DNA of 64,000 nt from Podarcis muralis (lineage: Eukaryota), in NCBI RefSeq assembly GCF_964188315.1, contig NC_135670.1, positions 11,656,001 to 11,720,000 on the forward strand. The letters run 5' to 3'. A model generated the notes under the pieces. That model searched no databases, was not told the origin of the DNA, and saw only the letters and a list, made by a program, of their open reading frames with translations. The position numbers and the translations under genes are program-made. Below are positions 16,601 through 63,000 of this stretch, in pieces (position 1 is the stretch's first letter; each line of letters starts with the position of its first letter).

Positions 16601-19600
16601 AGAGCTGGATATTATTACCACATCAAAGCTTTGGTATGGTTCTGCTTCTTGCCTTGATTGGCTTTTTTGCTTTTCTCCCCCTCAGATTCCCTATGGAAGG
16701 AAATATGAAAAGGCCTGGCTGATTAATGCCATTCAGAATTTGTGCAGCGTTCCCTTCACTCCTGTGGAGGTAAGAGAGGCATACACATGTTCCCTGGGCA
16801 AGAATTTTCCTTTCTGTTTTACAGAATTGGCAGTCTTGTGATTCCCAAATGGTGTGCTGCAATAGGAGCTGGGGTATTCCTTGAAACCGCCATGTCGGAT
16901 GCATCCAGCACCCATTGTCATTTGGATCAGGAGGCTGTATGTGGCATTGATTTGATCTTGCCCCCACCCCAGTTAGTAAATTGCCAATGGTATTCTGATA
17001 TAAGTTGCACCAGCAATACTCAGATTATAAGGTGCTGGGCAGGGGCTGCGTTTCCTTGGGTGTACCCAGTATTGATTCTACTCAGAAAAATTAGCTACTG
17101 TTTTTTAGAAATGCCAAGCAAGAATGTTTGGTTAGAACTGGGGAAAAGAGGAGTCAAGGAATGGAGCTTGTGTGAAGTTCCTCAACTTTCTCCCACAATT
17201 CAAGCTCTATACACTAGCATCCCATGCTGCAGCTGACGGGTACAGGGGAATCCCTGAGTCACCACCATTGCTTAGAATACCCAGTTGCTTCTATAGGCCT
17301 TAACCACCTGAGCAGGATGCCAGGAGGCATTAATTGTACTTCTCTGCATTTGAAGGGAGAGGTACTTCTCTCTTTCCCCCCCTCAGAACCAATCAATAAA
17401 ATGTTAGTCATTTTTGAGCATCTGAGTGAATTGTGCCTTCAATTTTAATCTAGGAAAAAACTTACTGTGTCCTAGATAATTCAGCAGTTTTGGAAATGCT
17501 GGTGCTAGTGAAATAAAAATATCATGAAGGAATGCGGAGACTAGGGGTGGCATGAGGCTGGCATTAGCAGAACGTGTTGGTGATGGGGAAGCTTAAAAGC
17601 TCCAAGCCCTGCACCTTCTGGTCACTCAAAGCTGTGCCCAGAGGCATTACAAGGCACCTTCCATGTTGTATAGTCTTTATTAATTATGAAGATCAGCTCC
17701 TTTTTTCTAATTAAAGAAGAATGAGCTCTGTCTCACACCAAGACCTTTCCCCCTCTTGCCGCAGCTACACTATGCCAATAATCGGGTAGTGTTCTATGTG
17801 GAAGATGCCTCTGCAGCCAACGCCCTCAAACAGGTGTCTCGAAAGATTGTTGCCCCAGATGGCTACAAGGTTGGTTTGTTCTTCCTCTGTGGGCCTGGGG
17901 CTAGTGGGGGGGGGGGATACATGAGGTTGGAGGGCGATTAGCTATGTCCAGACTAGTGAGGTTGCTTGGTCAGTTATAGCTCTGACCTGCCTCATGTGAT
18001 CGTCCTTTGCTGACACAGCTTAGATTCAAGCAGTGCTTGCAAAGGAAGAAAGGAAAGAATCAGGAGTCCACTCTTAATTATTTCCTTTGAAGTTGTGAGG
18101 TCAGGTAACTGAGAGATGGTCAACCTCGCCCATCGGCCAGAGTGGATCAAGGGGGAGTGGGGGAGCTTAGGATCCAGCCCACCTGCAAGATCTTGTTCCC
18201 CAGTCCTCTCTACATACATTAAGTAGCCTGGGCAGGGATTAACCTGCACCCATCCAATCTCTCAACTGGCATTTCTTTCAGGTTGTGATACTTTTAAACC
18301 CATGCAGTCCACCAACATCTGTCCAGCGTGAATTGAAACCAGAGGAGATTGAGCAGCTGAAGGTGAGTGGAATGTGCCAGAACTTTAGTACTATTTTCTT
18401 GCCTTCCACTTGCCAGTCTGCCCTGCATTCCCACAGGTGGTTTGTGTCTGGTGTTTTTCTCTTTGGGAACCTGACAATGATCCTTGATTTTAAACTGTCT
18501 CAAGAGGTTAGCGAGTTGGAATGGGAGATGCCATCTGTCTTTAGTGGGAAAACAAGTCCCTGTTCAGGTTGTGATTGTACAATCTCTTCCTAACCTTGGT
18601 TTGGTTTTTTTCTTTTGCTTGGGGTACTGAGAGTCTCTTCTTCCCCTCAAGCAGGCAGGAATAAGCCTGTCTGAGTCCTTATCTATCTAATGGAAATTTT
18701 CTCTCTCCTTCCAGCTTTGCATGAGTAAAAGATACGATGGTTCCCAGCAGGCCTTGGATCTAAAGAACCTTCACACAGATCCAGGTAGGTCACCGTACCC
18801 ACCTTTTCACTGTTGGGACTGCTGTTCTTCTACACACCTAGAACTCTGGTTCCAGCTTCAGGGGCAGAGGTGGGTTTCTGTTGCAGATTCCAGCTGGCAG
18901 TGAAGTGAGATTCATTCTACTTTTTAACTCCCCAGATCTGGTAGCCCAGAACATTGACATGGTGTTGAGTCGCCGAAGCTGCATGCTAGCTGTGCTGCGG
19001 ATCATCCAGGAGAACATTCCTGAGGTCATCCATTTCTCTCTCCCTTTCCCTCTCTTCAACCCAGCCTTTTTCTTGCCTTGGTGCCCTCGGGGATTGGTGA
19101 TTTCTCTGAAATTTCATGCTGAAAAGATTTCAGCTTGCCCTCAAATGAATATGGACCCTTGTAAGTAAGTGGTCCATAATTACAAACCATACACGAAACA
19201 TCATAGAAGGGGTGGCAATATTGGATTTGCGTTTTTTGTTTATTTGTTCTTGTATTTATCGTGTATTTTGTATCTTATCTTCTATTTTTATGTTGTGAAC
19301 TGTCCTGATCTACAGATGGAGGGCGGTATACGAATGTAAATAAAGAAATAAATCTTACTGTACTTTAATTTATTTTTTAATGAGGTTTTTTTTTAAAATA
19401 CAAAAACTGCCTTGAGGTCACTTGGTGGCAAAAAGCACATCTCTCACTCACACCTCACAAATCCCACCCCCATCTGTCCTTGCAGCTCCTTTCTCTGAAC
19501 TTGAGTGACAACAAGCTCTATCGGCTGGATGATATGGCTGAGCTGCCCCAGAAGGCTCCCAACCTGAAGATCCTCAATTTGTCTTCTAACCAGGTAGGGC

Positions 19601-22600
19601 TGGATGCTCACTAGCTCAGCCTGAATCTTCCATTGGGTAAAATCCTCACTCTCTTCACTATGCTCTCTTTCTTTCCCTCCTGGCTCCCTTCAGTTGAAGA
19701 CAGACCGTGACTTGGACAGGTTAAAAGACTTGAAGCTTGAGGAACTATGGCTGGATGGCAACCTGTTGTGTGATAGCTTCCGCGACCAGTCTACCTACAT
19801 CAGGTGAGCAGTAGCCCTGGAGCTGCCTAAGATGTCCTGGAAGGGCGCACCTCCACCTACCCAGAGGGCATTCAGGGCATGATTAAGATGTTTCTTGCCA
19901 AAAGGCGTATTTTGCCCTCCTAGGGGTGCCAGCTTGGTTATTTTGACCCCAGAGCACCATCTGCCTCGGCTGCAGCCAAATCTCTGAAGACGCTGCATCC
20001 CATTCCTGGATCCTGAGTTGTGATTCTTGTGATAATGGTTTTATTTCAGCCAGATTGGAGCACTGCCCAGCCCCGTCTCCTCCCCCACCCCATATTGATA
20101 TTACTACATTTATTAGCTGAAATTTGCTTTTGTGGATGATCTGCCATATCGCACCTCCCAGCCACCCCAGCCTTGCTTCTCTTCCTTGTGAAATCTTCCT
20201 TTCCCCCTCCCCCGCTTTTCTGTCTGCCTTCCACTCTCCGCTCTGCACACGCCACTTGCTTTTCTCTGCCCCCGGGGGCTCTAGGACCTCAGGATGCGCA
20301 GCCTTTTCCATCCTCTCAAGTTCCCCATGTGCACTGCCACCCTCCTTTGAGCCTGCCATGCTGAGCCACCTTGTTCGTGGCCTTGCCTGCTTCTATATTT
20401 ATATATTGTGGCTCCCCAATGCTGTACCTGGAAGTACCATATTGCACAGAGGCACGTGGAAGTCTTTCTTTTGGAGAATTGAAGCTAAGCTGCTAAATCC
20501 TGGGGTGCCCCTGGTGCGTTTGGCTCTCACAGATGGCTGGTTAGCCAGTGACGGGTAAGATTCCTTGCGGAAGGAACAACCTAAGACAGGCACAGCCGCA
20601 CGGTGGCCAAACGGAGCCCTTCCGCCCGCCTCCGGGGAAGTTGGCAAACACAAGGCACCAGAACCCTCCTTCACAGGCTTGTCGTCGGCAAGTAGCTTTT
20701 GGACAGCCTCTGCGCCATTTCTAATGGGGAGACTTTTGCTTCTTGATGATCTGGGAGTGACGATGGTGCTGACTCTGGATGGAGCAGCAGCAGCAGACTG
20801 AAGTGACAAGCTTCTTGCAAGGAAAACTCTTTCTCCCCCAGTTGTGCACTTGGAAGTCCTGTTTGTGTGGCCAAGGCATCTGTATCTCTGCAGGGTTGGG
20901 GCGTCCAGAAGGGGCAGTGTGGAGGATGGATGAGGCTGTGCATCAGTAGGGAGGAGTTTCCAGGCCTTTTTTTCTTTGTTTCCATCACTCTGGCGTCCCT
21001 CTGCTTCTCCCTCCCCCACCCGCATCTTCCATGGTCATTAATTAGATTTGGGCCTTGATGCAGGAACTCTCCCAAAGCTGTTTTAAGTTGGGTGCCAGGA
21101 AGTTGGCTCAGGCATCTCCATGACCAGTGGGAATTCTTGTCCATTTCCCTACTTCCCCTTCCCTGCCCCTGCCCTCTGGCCTCAGTGGAGCGCTCCTCCT
21201 ATAAATTGGGCCATGTGGGTGAGTACACACTCAGGTAAGTGCAGAGGGAGACTTTGAGTAGCATGGCTTTGGAGACTTCTGCCTCTCGCACCCGTGTGCA
21301 TGTGTAAAACTACCACGGGAAGAGTACCAGAGCATTTTACTTTAAAGGCTGTGTTCTGCTACCTACTAATTTTTTGAAGTTGGCTAACTGTCACTCACCC
21401 TTGTATGGTATCAAGTGACAGAACCATAATAGTGAAATTGATCAACTTTTCCCTTAAATTGTCTGACAATATTAAAGGAAAGCTGACTCAGCATTTTCTC
21501 CTAGGTGAGATTTGAGTCAGATTTTAATACGCAGGGTGGGAAATGTCAAATATAATCAGATGTCTCTTTAAACTGGATTGCAGTAGTTCTCTAATCCAGC
21601 ATAAGCAGTACGATCCTTTTAACCCCATTCGTGTTGCTTCTTCTGTGGCTAACGGAAGATGCAGAGCCTAATACGGTTCCACGTGCAGCTTTAGCAACCC
21701 GTCCCTGATTTTGTACACGTTCTACCTTTGTTTAAAATGCTTGTACGTGTAAATTTCTTAGGCTTCCCAAGAAACATACAGTTTGAGAGCCTTGGGCGGT
21801 GGGCTTTCGTTAAAAGATTCTGGTAATGCCGCCATTTTGTGGTGTTTCTCCACGCTCCTAAGAAGGCCCAGATGCGTGGAATGAAACTTGTGGGACATGT
21901 CTCCTAAGTTCTTCCAGTTGGGGAGCTGGTTGTTGCTCTGTAATTCAGAATCCAGGAAGTGAGGTGTGGTGAGGTGAGGGTTCTGAATCACCAGTGGGCA
22001 GCCTATATAATTCGGTGGGCATCTGTTTGGCCCAGGATAACAAATTGATAACACCTCCACCTCCTGACAGCAGTTGAGGCAACTTCTTTTTGCAAGACTT
22101 CCCACCTTGGTTTTAAAGGATGCTTTAGAGAATGATGGCCAGTGGCCAGGGTGGGTAGAGGCCACAACAGGATGTAGTTCAGGTAGCACTGGCTGTAGTA
22201 GGAAGATGGTGGTAGCAGAAGGTGGGGACCACCCAGGTAGGCCACGGGTGGGGGGAGGGCAGTGCTCTTGGGGCACAAAGCTCTTTCATTCACTCCTTTT
22301 CCCCTTTCTGACAGCGCCATCCGCGAACGGTTTCCAAAGCTGCTGAGGCTGGTGAGTGAATTGTTCAAATTCCAGGTGGATTCTGAACCAGCTTTTGTAT
22401 CTGACAGTACTGTTGCCTTACCCTTCTGCCTCTCCCATCACAGGACGGCCATGAACTCCCCCCTCCGATCGCTTTTGATCTTGAAGCACCTACCACGCTT
22501 CCCCCTACTAAGGTACAGAAATGCTCGGAAGGGGCAGGGGAGGGGGCCTGTGTTGCTGTTGCCCTGAGAAAGCTGGCGCCTTTCGAGCCCTTGCTTCAGT

Positions 22601-24650
22601 CCCATTGCTTGGTGTGGCCTGTGGCATAGGATGCCTTAGGGCTGGTGCTAAGAGGGTACTTGGCAGGGTTTTTTTGGTGTTTGGGAGGAATGGAGGGGAA
22701 CAGATTAACATCCGGCTTCTCTCTTTGACTCTCCTCACTCAGGGCAGCTATTTTTGCTCTGAAGACTTAAAAGTGTTGATCCTGCGATTTCTGCAACAGT
22801 AAGTAGACCTGCAAGGTCTTGTACGTTAAAGAAAAGCAGAGCCCCTGCCAACAAGTTTATAACCTGGGGGATTTGGCACACACAAAAAGGGGAGCTAGAG
22901 GGTAAAGATCTTCAGTTTTAAGTTGGTTCCTGGGAAGAGGGTAGTGGTAATGATGCTGGCTGGCATTTGAAAACCAGGGTTTGAAATTTCATTCCAGTGT
23001 TTAAAACTTGGCTAGCAAAAAGGATCGTTGACTACTGTAATTGAAAGAAGCAAAAGGCTTTATTGAGGCACAGTACCCAATACAATAGGGACGCGAGTGG
23101 CGCTATGGTCTAAACCACTGAGCCTAGAGCTTGCCGATCAGAAGGTCAGCAGTTCGAATCCCCGCGACAGGGCGAGCTCCCATTGCTCAGTTCCAGCTCC
23201 TGCCGACCTAGCAGTTCAAAAGAACGTCAAAGTGCAAGTAGATAAATAGGTACCGCTCTGGCGGGAAGGTAAACGCCGTTTCCGTGCACTGCTCTGGTTT
23301 TGCCAGAAACGGCTTAGTCATGCTGGCCACATGACCCGGAAAAACTCTGCGGACAAACGTCAGCTCCCTCGGCCAGTAAAGCGAGATGAGCGCCGCAACC
23401 CCAGAGTCACTCGCGACTGGACTTAAGTGTCAGGGGTCCTTTACCTTTACCCAGTACAATGGAAATAACATAATAGAAATAATAAAGCGGCTACAGCCTC
23501 CCTTCCATTCTGGCTGTTTCTTTAGCAATGTTTGTATTCTCCCACAGATATTACACTGTCTATGATTCTGGGGACCGGCAAGGGTTATTGGACGCCTACC
23601 ACGATGGAGCCTGCTGCTCCCTGAGCATCCCCTTCTCACTACACAACCATTCCAGGTAAGTTTACGCTTCTGACATTTGTTCCCTTGCCAACGGGAGAGG
23701 ACTGCACTTTGCCCTGCTACACTGTGCTTTGGTTTTGGTGTGACATGGTGTGAGACAGGCTGTGTGCACCCTGTCTAAAGTTTCTGTGCCAAGATGTGGG
23801 GCATTTTGCAACCTATACTAAGCAAACAAGAGTTGCTTGTATTAGTCACAAGGAGATTCAAAGAGCTGTGTGTGGATCTTGCACATGCCTCCCATTCAAG
23901 TATTTCACGCTTTGCAAGCATGAAATCTTTTTGTAAGATGCCATACATTTGGTTGCATTGTGTTGATTGGCAAGAAGATTTGGTGATAAATAAATCTAAC
24001 TAGACTGTTCAGAGGACAGCTTACTTTTTTCAAAATCCTCCTACCAAGAGAGAGACTAGGTTGAAAGTACATGGAGCTGCTTGCTTTACTTTGGAGCCAG
24101 CTGGGGATTTAACCCTTGGCACGCTGCCTCCAAACCCAACATTTTGCCCACTGCAGCCAAGTATACACCTCCTGCTATGTAAAGAAAGACCTGGGGAAAC
24201 GGGTAGGCATTTATGTTCCTGTTTTGTCTGCAGGAGCACTCTGGCTGAATACTTCAAGAACAGCAGGAATGTGAAGAAGCTTAAGGATCCCAGTAAGTAA
24301 TGACCAGTGGCGGGGGTGGGGTGGGTGTACAAGGCTACAGACTCTTTTATGGACAGTGTGTAATCAAAAGTGTTTCATGGGAGATGGGCCCTGCACAGTG
24401 ATTCTGCTGCGGAGGTTGGGACCCCAGTGCACAAAAGAGGGGAGCTGAATGGTGAAAGGATTTGGGACAACGCTCAAATCCACACTGAAGCCCTTCATTC
24501 GTAGCAGTCCAGTTGTGGAAGAGGATAACAGAAAAGCCCCTGATTAAAGTGAATAAACTGTATTGTTGGCTATTTTGGAACAAGAGCAGTGGTTTTTTTT
24601 TATTTTTTAGGGTTGGGGCAGATGCTCCTACATTAGTGGATTGTCCCCCA

Positions 24651-60001: not shown

Positions 60002-63000
60002 ATGGTGAGCGAGGGAGGGAGGGGGGCTTAAATGGGGAGGGGGCGAAGAGGGAGGTCATGTGAGGAGGGGGGTCTCGACCTGCCCCCCCCCCGCAGTGTG
60101 GCGTCTTAAGGGGGTCAGGCCCCTTTTCTCAATGGAGGGCTATATGGGGAGGGGACCCTCTCCAAAATGAAGATGTCTGTGTTGGGGAGGGGTCTTCCAC
60201 CATGGAGATCTTCCCATGGTCAGGTTCAAGATAAATAAGGTTTTTAGGATTCACATCCTATCCCCCAAATATGATGTGCGTGGAGTTGGGTTAATGGGGG
60301 GGGGGGGTGCTCCGATGTCTGATGGGGACGGAAGATGGGGGCCTTTGTGGCTTTTATCATATTACTGGGTCACAGGGAGGGGGGCTGGGACATCCCACCA
60401 ATGATGGCATATTATAGGGTGGAAGCTTATGAAGGTGAAGAAGTGGGAGGGGTTCAAAGTGTCTTTCCTCCTCCCACCCCCCATTTTTTATTTTTACCCA
60501 TGTTGGGGGTTTGAGGAGCTGGAAGTGGATGGGTTAATAGGAGATGGGTGTAGAGGAAGAAAAAGCTGTATATGGCCAGCTTTCCCCTCCCTCTGCAAAG
60601 GATGTGGGGGTGATGAAGTCTAAGGGGAATCTTTTAACTTCTCCCCAAAAGCGGGAGGAGTCAAGAGAGGAATCGCCTCAAAAACAGCTGCACCTGTGGA
60701 ACACCCTCCCCTTAAAAATGAAGGTGGAAGTCTTCTTGGAATGGGCTCATAAAAGTATGCAGCACTGGCAGAGAGAGATTTATAAAGGTTGGGGTGCTGA
60801 GAAGAGGATCCCTTAAATAAGGGGGGATTTGATAAAAGTGTGGATACTGGGATAGTTGGGGTTCCTCATATTCCCCCAAAAGTGGGGTGCTCAGCTAAGA
60901 GGCAGTTGATAAAAGATGGAGCATTGGGAAGAAAACTCCTGAAGAAGGAGGGTGATGTGATGAGAGAATATGAAAAAGGGGTTTGCCTGTCTTGAAATGG
61001 GAAGAACATAATTTGCAAAATTCAGAGCAGGTGGATAGGAAAGGGGGTGCCTTTAAAAGGAGATTCTGTTGTGTGACTAGAAAACCTCATTTTGAGGGCA
61101 CTTGAACTGCTGAGAAAGAGAAATGATAGTGGACACCTGATGGGGGAGAAAAGAGGCTTGTGCATGCAAGAGGGTGTGAGAATAAGAAGTGGAGGACACA
61201 CCCTTCAAGGAGTTACGTGCATGCTTGAGAGAATGACTGTGCTTAAGGCATCTCAAGTTTAAAAATGAGATAATGACAATATATAGACAAGGGTATATTT
61301 CAAAGTGAGGATGCATAGGAACATTGGACTTTATTGTGAGGAGTGGATAGTAAATCAGTGTTTTAAAAATGCAAAATAATGTGCTTTGTAGAGATCCAGA
61401 TCATTGGTCCATCTTGCTCAGTGGCTCTCTGGGTTTTCTGGCAGAAGTGCTCCCCAGCCCAGCCTGGAGATGCTGGGCCTTCAACCAGGGACCTTTTGCA
61501 TGCAAAGGAGGTGCTCTTCCACTGAGCTACAGCCCTTACCTAAAGCCTTGCACAGATTGAGAATGGAAATATAAAGGGAGCAGGGGTGAATCCCAAGACA
61601 GATGATGGGGTTGGGAGATACAGTATGAGCAGACAGGAGGGAGGATCTGTGTTTGTTCTCCCTCTTCCCTCATGTGGTTTCCATTAAATAAAGAATTAGT
61701 GGAAAGACAGTTGAGAAACTGGAAAGAGGCGCTTCCCTGAGAGAGGATTAAAAACTCCCCTTATGATTATAAAAGGAAAACATTGAAGGGTTTGGTGTGA
61801 TGTTGGTCACCTACCTTCTGATGAAGAGGGGAGGGGCACATGTTCCCAAGCTCTGTTGTGTCCTCCGAGTGTGAAAACGTAGATTGTAGCCTTCTAAGGG
61901 CAGAGATCTCCCTCTCTCCTGTTTTTGTGCTTATACTGCTTTGTAAACCACCATAAATGTTGGTTATAAATAGAAAAATGCTAACAATCTAAAATGGGTT
62001 ATTGACACAGGAACTTGGTGCATGTGATAAGGCTACATAAGGAAGGGTTAGGAGAACTTGAAGTAGGTGAGGTGGGAACCATAGGTGGCAGGAGCCCATC
62101 CAAGTTTGGAAGCAGTACAGGATGCGTGGAGAAGAGAGTCAGAGAGGAGCTGGTGGCCTCATGTTACCCTTCCTGAAGGCTGAAGTTGATGGACTGTACC
62201 TTGGGAAGAACACCTGCTTTGCATGCAGAAGGTCCCAGCTTCAATCTCCAGGAAGGGCAGGAGAGACCCCAAGCTGAAATCCTGATGAACTGCTGACAAT
62301 CAGTGTTGACAGTCCTGAGCTTGATGGACAAATGGTCCAAGTAAGCATAAGGCAGCTTCCTATATAAGGCAGGCCTGTGGGGAGTGTTCTGTTCTTAGTC
62401 AATAAGTCTACTTTGTTTGAGTTCAGATGTGAGTCTTTGGGAGAGAGCGGAGGCAACAACTGCACTGAGTTCAGAAGTCAATGAGTGTGTGTGTGTGTGC
62501 GTGAGAGAGAGAAAGAGAGAAAGAAAAATAAATGGGGTGCAGCTGTCATGGACCAGGAAGGTGAGACCTGCAAAACTTACTGATTTTCTCTCTCCTCCCT
62601 CACCATTCTCCATGGCCTTCCTGCAGGCTGATCAGCTGACAGAGGAGCAAATAGCAGGTGAGAAATTATCTTGCTCCTGGGGACAGGAACATTGGCAGCA
62701 TCTGTCAAAATCTAAAGGGTTTGATGGTACCAGTTGTGTGGCATAAATGTCAAGAGAGCCAGCAGTTGGTGCTGGACTTGGTCCTCCATCCAAACTCTAG
62801 CTTGGCCCTGAACGTCCTAGCTAAACTCACTGCCTCACAATCTCCCAGCCTTTGCTCCTTTCCTGTGTAAAAGAGGAGCATGTGTAATGTCCTTTCTCAA
62901 AAGTACTTCTCTGAATACTGCTTGACCTCTGCCCTACTGATTTAAACCCTTAAAGCCAGCTGAGTGTACCTTGAAGGGAGGGGAGGAGCATGCTGATGTC

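Follow-up and report, generated by a model that had tools for sequence, protein, structure and literature searches.

The window, i.e., the whole stretch of 64,000 nucleotides of Podarcis muralis DNA that was analysed, carries on its + strand the gene encoding NXF1, the main mRNA export receptor, for which the protein search was done with exon 19 alone and then with database proteins. The RNA that retains intron 10 of this gene is the classic cellular transcript depending on the constitutive transport element CTE, and the presence of the CTE within NXF1 intron 10 was described before, intron 10 of amphibians, coelacanth and teleosts being known to carry one as well (PMC4338338). RNA junctions 19593>19694, 19803>22315 and 22351>22444 confirm the exon borders in the lizard. 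The features of the region are the following:

19694-19803, + strand: NXF1 exon 10 with a phase-2 end (...TAC ATC AG) and the strong donor CAG|GTGAGC (junctions, translation; donor score 11.0)
19804-22314, + strand: NXF1 intron 10 with a length of 2511 nt and strong retention in lizard RNA (RNA depth)
20517-20613, + strand: CTE, the NXF1-binding export element (strongest conserved block of the 12-species alignment)
21037-21135, + strand: upstream conserved flank (squamate blocks 21037-21070 and 21087-21111)
21136-21182, + strand: C/T-rich tract (34/40 pyrimidines; a comparable tract precedes the donors in 12/12 species)
21183-21185, + strand: CAG acceptor proposed by the sequence-only reading (found in two lacertids only in the alignments)
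21186-21234, + strand: hypothetical cassette of 33 nt (to 21218) or 49 nt with an in-frame TAA at 21202-21204 (no use seen)
21216-21224, + strand: U1 site 1, TGG|GTGAGT (CGG in other individuals and in Zootoca), candidate orthologue of the mouse NXF1-enChr core CAGGUGAGU
21232-21240, + strand: U1 site 2, CAG|GTAAGT, perfect consensus (fits the mouse 'weak U1 site' at positions 53-59)
22315-22351, + strand: NXF1 exon 11 (junctions 19803>22315 and 22351>22444)

Direct reading of the window confirmed all components listed by the sequence-only reading, i.e., the pyrimidine tract, the CAG acceptor, the donors at 21219 and 21235 and the in-frame TAA. The two pseudo-5′ splice sites lie next to each other behind a C/T-rich tract, approximately 600 nt downstream of the CTE. 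The GT of donor 1 is located at 21219 (TGG|GTGAGT) and the GT of donor 2, 16 nt further on, at 21235 (CAG|GTAAGT), and the latter site, CAGGTAAGT, matches the 5′ end of U1 snRNA in 9/9 positions. Upstream of the acceptor 34 of 40 nucleotides of the tract are pyrimidines, and the two variants that the RNA runs carry within it, 21146 T>C and 21155 C>T, preserve the pyrimidines. The AG of the acceptor occupies 21184-21185 and a hypothetical exon would therefore begin at 21186; as exon 10 ends in phase 2, its inclusion would read AG + T GGA GCG CTC CTC CTA TAA, placing the stop at 21202-21204. Position 21216, i.e., position −3 of donor 1, is T in the window and C in all four RNA runs, and C is also present at the equivalent position in Zootoca and Varanus.

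With an approximate 5′ splice-site weight matrix, the scores of which are rough, the donors at 21219 and 21235 reach 8.6 and 12.7 bits and those of NXF1 exons 10 and 11 reach 11.0 and 10.6, and 21219/21235 is the only donor pair on both strands of the whole 64 kb with scores of at least 8.6 within 30 nt. A stringent filter for an acceptor plus a donor yielded six matches on the + strand of the window, comprising NXF1 exons 10 and 20, the tandem-donor element and three matches without an assigned identity (302-359, 964-1046 and 62627-62658). In 2000 dinucleotide-preserving shuffles of intron 10, evaluated by criteria chosen after the element had been seen, the frequency was 1.4% for a pseudo-exon of this kind, 0.5% for a two-donor pseudo-exon and 1.5% for a tandem donor pair. 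Splice-site look-alikes are abundant in vertebrate introns, and a functionless pseudo-exon formed by chance might be considered on these grounds; the shuffle frequencies of about 1% argue against it, and the preservation of both motifs and of their spacing in 12 amniotes, described below, already refutes it, leaving this explanation with a negligible probability.

Intron 10 is strongly retained in lizard RNA, i.e., to approximately 38% in X1, 72% in X14, 43% in X22 and 79% in X23. In the stranded raw reads the depth over intron 10 is about equal to that over the exons, and introns 9 and 11 of NXF1 were seen only spliced. The retained intron was assembled as one unbranched contig in two RNA assemblies; the contig covering 19774-22341 showed a word depth of 30.8 in X1 and 35.1 in X14, and the spliced 57-mer had a word depth of 49.8 and 13.4, respectively. 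Every stranded read derives from + strand RNA, and an antisense transcript was thereby rejected.

The sequence-only reading had furthermore proposed that the element may route transcripts to nonsense-mediated decay (NMD). None of the junctions expected for this, 19803>21186, 21218>22315 and 21234>22315, was seen in two raw stranded RNA runs of low depth with NMD intact, and neither joints nor loose ends were detected in these runs at 21186, 21218 or 21234. The depth was low to modest, with about 12% of each raw run used; joints were reported from 3 reads with at least 2 start positions per run, and the canonical junction of exons 10 and 11 was covered by 11 reads in total, so that rare use of the sites may have escaped detection.

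To assess the conservation, intron 10 was compared in 12 amniotes, i.e., Podarcis muralis, a second lacertid (Zootoca), Varanus, Anolis, a gecko, a boa, a turtle, an alligator, a kiwi, echidna, alpaca and the marsupial Dromiciops. The intron varies in length from 1.4 to 4.7 kb across amniotes. The CTE is 88-97% identical to the window in the 11 other species in blastn alignments, and the echidna CTE is 92-94% identical to that of alpaca or Dromiciops; an Rfam scan of 19000-23000 with E values up to 1 gave zero matches, also for the CTE. Outside the CTE intron 10 is otherwise unalignable across the 12 species, and at a threshold of 0.8 the tandem-donor element is the sole further block of more than two alignment columns. 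Here, GGTGAGTA and AGGTAAG are unchanged in 12/12 amniotes, and the same holds for the U1-complementary motif of the CAGGUGAGU type, GGTGAGT, located at 21218-21224 in the lizard, where T/CGG instead of CAG stands before the GT. The two donors are 16 nt apart in squamates and 15 nt apart in the other species, and in all 12 species the pair lies between the CTE and exon 11, 380-970 nt 3′ of the CTE. A chain of pairwise blastn similarities joins squamates, turtle, archosaurs, monotreme and therians at the element, and this chain together with the conserved position indicates that the element is probably orthologous to the mammalian one.

The acceptor behaves differently. The AG in the column of 21185 is missing in Varanus, Anolis, the gecko and all non-squamates, and the cassette of 33 or 49 nt beginning behind it, as put forward by the sequence-only reading, is not upheld. 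Since this AG is restricted to lacertids, what is conserved is the tandem 5′ splice-site motif together with the C/T tract rather than a cassette exon. Donor 1 has the form YAG|GTGAGT behind a pyrimidine tract in turtle, alligator, kiwi, echidna, alpaca, Dromiciops and boa; four of five squamate families have lost this AG with both donors remaining invariant, which argues for selection acting on the 5′ splice-site motifs and not on a 3′ splice site. Moreover, RNAalifold on the 12-species core yielded −0.42 kcal/mol with neither covariation nor conserved secondary structure, single-sequence folding of the element gave z = +0.39, and a small hairpin confined to squamates (GAGU/ACUC) was not significant. 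The lack of conserved structure and the match to the 5′ splice-site consensus suggest that the constraint acts on the primary sequence. A coding exon of an unannotated isoform was rejected by the in-frame stop, the spacing of 15 versus 16 nt and the absence of three-base periodicity. Further upstream, a box around ATGACCAGTGGGAAT (21120-21134) can be made out in the alignments with turtle and kiwi and more loosely with mammals, and it might represent the branch-point region.

These data allow to judge a productive poison cassette or a recursive-splice microexon. Exon 10 would join the CAG at 21185 in lacertids and the YAG abutting GTGAGT in other amniotes, in the latter case creating a 15-nt exon, and inclusion would result in an immediate stop, NMD and less NXF1. 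The lizard cassette does carry the in-frame TAA at 21202-21204, and the YAG|GTGAGT behind a tract in boa and non-squamates has the form of a recursive splice site, at which AG|G TGA would stop translation at once. It also resembles recursive splice sites with RS-exons, as the motif reads (Y)n...YAG|GTGAGT in boa and the non-squamates and a second donor follows 15 nt downstream; in the lizard, by contrast, the AG is missing (TGG|GT, CGG in other individuals), and recursive junctions were not seen. Recursive splicing is usually found in very long introns, whereas intron 10 is short, with 2.5 kb in the lizard. The zero junction reads and the unbranched contig speak against this explanation at modest depth and with NMD intact, as does the loss of the donor-1 AG in four of five squamate families while the donors are invariant; this AG, moreover, simply belongs to the 5′ splice-site consensus. 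The literature search found nothing that connects NXF1 with recursive splicing or poison exons, and the mouse element described below acts in a reporter without splicing (bioRxiv 10.1101/310433). Taken together, a productive exon of either type is quite improbable.

For mouse NXF1 intron 10, Yin et al. described a U1 recognition motif, CAGGUGAGU, with a weaker second U1 site, forming the element NXF1-enChr that keeps the intron-retaining transcript, NXF1-IR RNA, on chromatin (bioRxiv 10.1101/310433). It is a strong chromatin-enrichment element of 162 nt near the 3′ end of the intron, in which the first U1 site is at positions 37-45 and the weak one at positions 53-59, and 19 of 23 loss-of-retention mutations fall within a 7-nt motif of CAGGUGAGU; the motif and its neighbouring sequence were called highly conserved (bioRxiv 10.1101/310433). 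U1 RAP-RNA was approximately 70-fold enriched at the element, and retention required SNRNP70, SNRPA and SNRPC but neither U2AF1/2 nor SF3A2 in the reporter, in which the element elicited no splicing and the motif lowered rather than raised expression (bioRxiv 10.1101/310433). The sequence-only reading knew of no description for this intron, which is superseded by this publication of the mouse counterpart. In the literature searched for NXF1 with decoy, poison or cryptic exons or with recursive splicing nothing was found on the tandem-donor element, the preprint on U1-mediated chromatin retention (bioRxiv 10.1101/310433) being the sole description found; it uses neither decoy exon nor poison exon as a name, and an effect on intron retention was outside its tests.

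The lizard element is located in the same gene and intron, 3′ of the CTE and toward exon 11, and consists of the same core GGUGAGU followed at the same offset by a second U1-type site; splicing at the sites was seen neither in the mouse reporter nor, at limited power, in the lizard. The match to a U1 snRNP-binding element in mouse thus suggests a known kind of element and not a new poison exon. There are also differences. Of the two mouse sites the first is strong and the second 'weak', whereas in the lizard site 1 is T/CGG|GTGAGT and site 2 a perfect CAG|GTAAGT; as lizard site 1 lacks the A at position −2 (TGG/CGG versus CAG), its pairing with U1 would be poorer than that of the site in mouse. 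The donor spacing is 16 nt compared to 15 nt in NXF1-enChr, and the distance to exon 11 is approximately 1080 nt compared to approximately 300 nt. The proposed identity with NXF1-enChr relies on the motif as published, the offset at which the second site follows, the location within the intron and the sequences of echidna, alpaca and Dromiciops, with the mouse element entering through its published description.

On these grounds, the element is probably orthologous to the U1-recognition element NXF1-enChr of mouse and would retain the intron-10-containing NXF1 RNA. U1 snRNP would base-pair with one or both sites with splicing there being absent or very rare, and the intron-retaining transcript would be held on chromatin or within the nucleus by the bound U1. 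Such retention would be the counter-force to the CTE, by which the NXF1 protein exports the same RNA. Intron 10 would then carry both the signal for holding and the signal for export, and the level of NXF1 could decide on the fate of its own intron-retaining RNA. We infer by analogy that the lizard element acts as the mouse one does, and U1 retention and the CTE may together form a feedback loop. Along these lines, consensus 5′ splice-site motifs in mature RNAs lead to nuclear retention via U1-70K and ZFC3H1, and an intact consensus motif in a polyadenylated RNA results in nuclear retention and decay (PMC9074902). The lizard element resembles this pathway in its intact consensus, site 2 being exact, whereas that study used reporters and transcripts with intronic polyadenylation and neither NXF1 intron 10 nor antagonism with a CTE (PMC9074902).

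Pseudo-5′ splice sites which lie within or next to an intron are shared with two further systems, the mechanism of which may be comparable. In the NRS of Rous sarcoma virus and in IVS3 of the P element, pseudo-5′ splice sites bind U1 without being spliced and keep the RNA unspliced. The NRS additionally uses a U11 site and a half that binds SR proteins. The CTE was first found in a retrovirus, and the NRS is retroviral as well.

The U1 bound at these sites might also serve other purposes, i.e., suppress premature polyadenylation (telescripting) or stabilise the unspliced RNA, as in HIV env RNA. Suppression of polyadenylation was named as a possible extra role of decoy 5′ splice sites by Parra et al. 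(PMC6097662), and Wang et al. proposed a role like the latter for a 5′ splice-site-like motif inside the CTE. However, intron 10 of turtle, alligator, kiwi, echidna, alpaca, Dromiciops and Varanus contains zero AATAAA or ATTAAA hexamers, those in the remaining squamates are unconserved, and molecule ends did not pile up in the reads over lizard intron 10. Stabilisation is at odds with the mouse reporter, the expression of which was lowered by the motif (bioRxiv 10.1101/310433). Both functions are very unlikely to account for the element, slightly more so than a productive exon.

A decoy exon as defined by Parra, Conboy and colleagues deserves more weight, although it is still an unlikely primary function. 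U2AF bound to the tract and U1 bound to the donors would build a complex resembling exon definition, and its unproductive pairing with the donor of exon 10 and the acceptor of exon 11 would set the retention of intron 10. The upstream pyrimidine tract and the branch-point-like box would be superfluous in a pure U1 tether and hint at 3′ splice-site factors or a decoy-exon-like assembly; both are conserved, and for mouse, binding of U2AFs and SR proteins outside the core U1 motif was reported around enChr elements in general (bioRxiv 10.1101/310433). Several competing 5′ splice sites and high conservation are features of decoy exons (PMC6097662, PMC7373989). Those of SF3B1 intron 4, OGT, ARGLU1, DDX39B and SNRNP70 are short, stop-containing pseudo-cassettes, a make-up which the sequence of the two lacertids resembles, in strongly retained introns of more than 1 kb in genes for RNA metabolism (PMC6097662, PMC7373989), and lizard intron 10 with its 2511 nt and a retention of about 38-79% fits this description. 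Moreover, squamate intron 10 is strongly retained despite the strong exon 10 donor, which is GTGAGC in squamates and GTCAGT in the other amniotes. The lizard element differs from the known decoy exons in that no junction reads to or from it were found, at low depth and with NMD intact, and in its unconserved 3′ splice site, other species having a different AG or only the AG of the donor consensus; the retained NXF1 RNA also bears the CTE, an export element which the decoy-exon examples are without. Furthermore, retention in the mouse reporter is independent of U2AF1/2 and SF3A2 (bioRxiv 10.1101/310433), and the literature search found no experiment tying the element to how much of the intron is retained. 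It is nevertheless plausible that the element acts as a decoy that sets intron retention; such a role is compatible with the U1 retention element and could be its splicing side. From the interpretation offered by the sequence-only reading, a genuine, selected tandem 5′ splice-site element in a CTE-bearing retained intron stands, whereas the cassette, the NMD routing and the novelty found no support; the element is best read as acting in splicing or retention in concert with the CTE.

Li et al. pointed out that some mechanism must keep the NXF1 intron-10 RNA nuclear unless the CTE is present (PMC5170612), and the U1 motif in mouse supplies the nuclear-hold mechanism they called for. What is new here is that both U1 sites, their spacing and their place relative to the CTE are kept in squamates, turtle, archosaurs and three mammalian groups. 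This arrangement of the U1 sites and the CTE across 12 amniotes suggests that the two elements likely work as one unit. The comparison does not reveal a new kind of system; it makes the decoy hypothesis directly testable. As a more speculative and rather doubtful extension, the tandem U1 sites and the tract might be a true splicing decoy that determines the unspliced share of intron 10 and, with the CTE, forms a more than 300-million-year-old sensor of retention versus export, by which the NXF1 protein would control what happens to its own RNA. This sensor would have been rewired in squamates by the change of the exon 10 donor from GTCAGT to GTGAGC, the loss of the AG at site 1, the shift in spacing from 15 to 16 nt and the shortening of the retained-intron reading frame to one extra residue. 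Squamates represent a natural variant of this arrangement, combining a strong donor of the intron with a changed first site and a very high level of retention.

The NXF1 orthologue lies on the + strand, and its nearest database protein by tblastn is the Zootoca vivipara NXF1 cluster, with 90-100% identity in single segments and 83.8% averaged across all segments, which overrun exon ends. The features around intron 10 are as follows.

Features of NXF1 around intron 10; exons and intron from translation and RNA junction reads
19694-19803, + strand, NXF1 exon 10
19804-22314, + strand, NXF1 intron 10, 2511 nt
about 20517-20613, + strand, constitutive transport element (CTE), within intron 10
22315-22351, + strand, NXF1 exon 11

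The sequence-only reading had described a decoy or poison exon with tandem donors in intron 10, and its components were confirmed: an AG at 21184-85 behind a tract with 34/40 pyrimidines, donors TGG/GTGAGT at 21219 and CAG/GTAAGT at 21235, and a stop-containing frame after exon 10, AG/T GGA GCG CTC CTC CTA TAA. With an approximate donor weight matrix, the tandem donors reach 8.6 and 12.7 bits compared with 11.0 and 10.6 for the adjoining real donors, and they form the sole donor pair at most 30 nt apart on either strand of the window. A stringent acceptor-plus-donor filter gave six matches on the + strand, three of which were identified, namely NXF1 exon 10, exon 20 and the element itself. Among dinucleotide-preserving intron shuffles, 1.4% contained a comparable pseudo-exon and 1.5% a tandem pair of donors, under criteria set after the element had been seen. 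That the element is a chance pseudo-exon is exceedingly improbable and ranks below the U1 tether and the decoy discussed below.

A literature search on NXF1 with decoy, poison or cryptic exons or recursive splicing found nothing on the element, and Wang et al. treat only the 5' splice-site-like motif inside the CTE. However, the supposition that it was undescribed for this intron did not hold, since its mouse counterpart was characterised in a screen for chromatin-retention signals across NXF1 intron 10, which yielded two strong elements toward the intron 3' end (Yin et al., bioRxiv 10.1101/310433). In the 162-nt NXF1-enChr, 19/23 loss-of-retention mutations fall in one 7-nt motif, which with its two preceding bases reads CAGGUGAGU; mutation of G at +3 to A increased retention, and positions 53-59 form a second, weak U1 site (bioRxiv 10.1101/310433). 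It was shown that U1 is about 70-fold enriched at the element by RAP-RNA, and that a GFP reporter elicits no splicing, holds about 40% of its RNA on chromatin and depends on SNRNP70, SNRPA and SNRPC and not on U2AF1/2 (bioRxiv 10.1101/310433). The motif and neighbouring sequence were called highly conserved; an effect on intron retention was not tested and the decoy idea not used (bioRxiv 10.1101/310433). In echidna, alpaca and Dromiciops, AGGUAAG fits positions 53-59 if the first site is 37-45. Because motif, second-site offset and intron position all agree with these mammalian introns, the lizard element is read as the orthologue of NXF1-enChr.

Orthologues were listed by searching exon 19 alone and then with a database NXF1 protein as query, and NXF1 genes of 11 amniotes (human not in the set) were compared with the window. 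The key result is the donor scan of each intron 10: without exception, a pair of strong donors separated by 15-16 nt lies between CTE and exon 11.

Tandem donors outside squamates
turtle: TAG/GTGAGT and CAG/GTAAGT
alligator and kiwi: CAG/GTGAGT and CAG/GTAAGT
echidna: CAG/GTGAGT and CAG/GTAAGA
alpaca: CAG/GTGAGT and AAG/GTAAGG
Dromiciops: CAG/GTGAGT and AAG/GTAAGA

Both donors are thus kept in all 12 species, with GGTGAGTA and AGGTAAG invariant in 12/12 (alignment A2). Apart from exon borders, the CTE and 21217-21237 are the only blocks of more than two columns in the whole-intron alignment at a threshold of 0.8. The 110-nt element is 94% (Zootoca), 84% (Varanus), 78% (Candoia), 76% (Eublepharis) and 70% (Anolis sagrei) identical to the window by blastn, equal to the adjoining coding exons; a larger domain, 21037-21247, is common to squamates, and a chain of pairwise similarity connects all clades. 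No conserved secondary structure of the element was found, and its folding energy is not unusual. Some 290 nt before the tandem donors, at 20925-20945, a third and weaker motif is conserved; it reads GGATGGATGAGGCTGTGC in squamates and GAAGAGGCTCTGC in turtle, alligator and kiwi, and its match is looser in mammals.

The proposed acceptor fared differently, its column lacking AG in Varanus, Anolis, gecko and all non-squamates. An AG directly before GTGAGT, present in non-squamates and boa, could in principle act as a 3' splice site, which would resemble a recursive site, with an exon of 15 nt in which TGA is met at once; the same AG is also plain 5' splice-site consensus. Four of five squamate families lost this AG yet kept both donors, so the 5' splice-site motifs are what selection acts on. 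The reading as a productive poison exon or recursive microexon ranks below tether and decoy, as distinctly unlikely.

RNA was examined over 19300-22700 in the raw stranded runs X22 and X23 (labelled as the window's species; about 12% of each) and in the contig sets X1 and X14 (X14 from a second organism, B), both of which contain spliced NXF1. Joints, listed only with at least three reads from at least two start positions after human-DNA-like reads were dropped, were found only at exons 9-10, 10-11 (8 and 3 reads) and 11-12. In these two raw runs and two assemblies, from samples with NMD intact, no joint or end occurred at 21186, 21218 or 21234, the borders of the proposed exon, at a modest depth of 11 canonical exon 10-11 junction reads that limits sensitivity to rare joints. 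Intron 10 itself is covered at about exon depth and assembles as a single unbranched contig, 19774-22341 (word depth 30.8 and 35.1; spliced 57-mer 49.8 and 13.4). From these depths, retention is about 38% (X1), 72% (X14), 43% (X22) and 79% (X23), and it is specific rather than pre-mRNA or DNA carry-over, because introns 9 and 11 were seen exclusively spliced. Position 21216 (donor 1, -3) is C in all four RNA sets, and two variants in the pyrimidine tract both preserve pyrimidines.

X22 and X23 are about 2% divergent from the window through numerous fixed substitutions and small indels, similar to the organism B run (X1 only about 0.3%), which points to deep structure among populations or subspecies, or else to loosely assigned species labels. 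Poly-C length varies at 21012-21021. Overlapping GTGAGG-type donor-like motifs cluster at 21955-21980 (best GAG/GTGAGG, 10.3 bits; conserved in Zootoca), where most X23 reads and the organism B contig carry a 5-nt deletion at 21968.

The intron 10 donor (19804-19809) is strong in all six squamates (CAG/GTGAGC, GTAAGC or GTGAGG; about 11 bits), whereas turtle, alligator, kiwi, echidna, alpaca and Dromiciops have GTCAGT after CAG, GAG or TAG (at most 8.7 bits). The strong donor coincides with AG loss at U1 site 1 in 4/5 squamate families (the exception is boa, with CAG) and, in all six squamates, with a spacer longer by 1 nt. In all squamates the retained-intron frame (19802-19809) adds one residue (R) and then meets TGA. 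Alpaca and Dromiciops have in common a tail of 18 residues (RSV...PPGD.HPLGG), as long as that reported for mammalian short Nxf1, and tails reach 27 residues in turtle and 50 to about 180 in alligator, kiwi and echidna. The CTE of the window is 88-92% identical to that of monitor, anole, gecko, boa, turtle, alligator, kiwi and echidna, and echidna is 92-94% identical to alpaca or Dromiciops; the published survey covers mammals, zebrafish and coelacanth only. CGG/GTAAGA within the CTE occurs in 11/12 species and is absent in boa at a score of at least 8. The length of NXF1 is about 5.5 kb in kiwi and 6-11 kb in alligator, turtle and alpaca, rising to 17-22 kb in most squamates and to 40 kb in Anolis sagrei, and TMEM70-like and syntaxin-5-like genes closely flank NXF1 in kiwi (locus L008, 1-415 and 6725-7551), echidna (L009, 36422-36814) and alpaca (L010, 12116-12691).

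Taken together, we consider it reasonably probable that U1 binds the tandem pseudo-5' splice sites but no splicing ensues, that bound U1 would keep NXF1 RNA that retains the intron nuclear or chromatin-bound, and that this holding would act against CTE-mediated export of the same RNA; for the lizard we infer the steps shown in mouse. Such a U1 tether agrees with the retention generally found for RNAs that carry an intact consensus 5'SS motif (PMC9074902) and fits the open question of what retains intron-10-retaining NXF1 RNA (Li et al., PMC5170612). A Conboy-type decoy that additionally sets the level of intron 10 retention would be a compatible extension and is possible, if rather doubtful: the pyrimidine tract is conserved, a branch-point-like box is present and retention is high in squamates despite the strong exon 10 donor, but junction reads are missing, the acceptor is unconserved and the mouse reporter is U2AF-independent. 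Telescripting or RNA stabilisation, ranked below both, is slightly less likely even than the microexon, as intron 10 has no conserved poly(A) hexamers.

The original observation is right and the element clearly functional; it belongs to a known kind and had already been characterised in mouse. New are the finding that both sites are invariant across the amniotes compared, the changes specific to squamates and the retention data from lizards.
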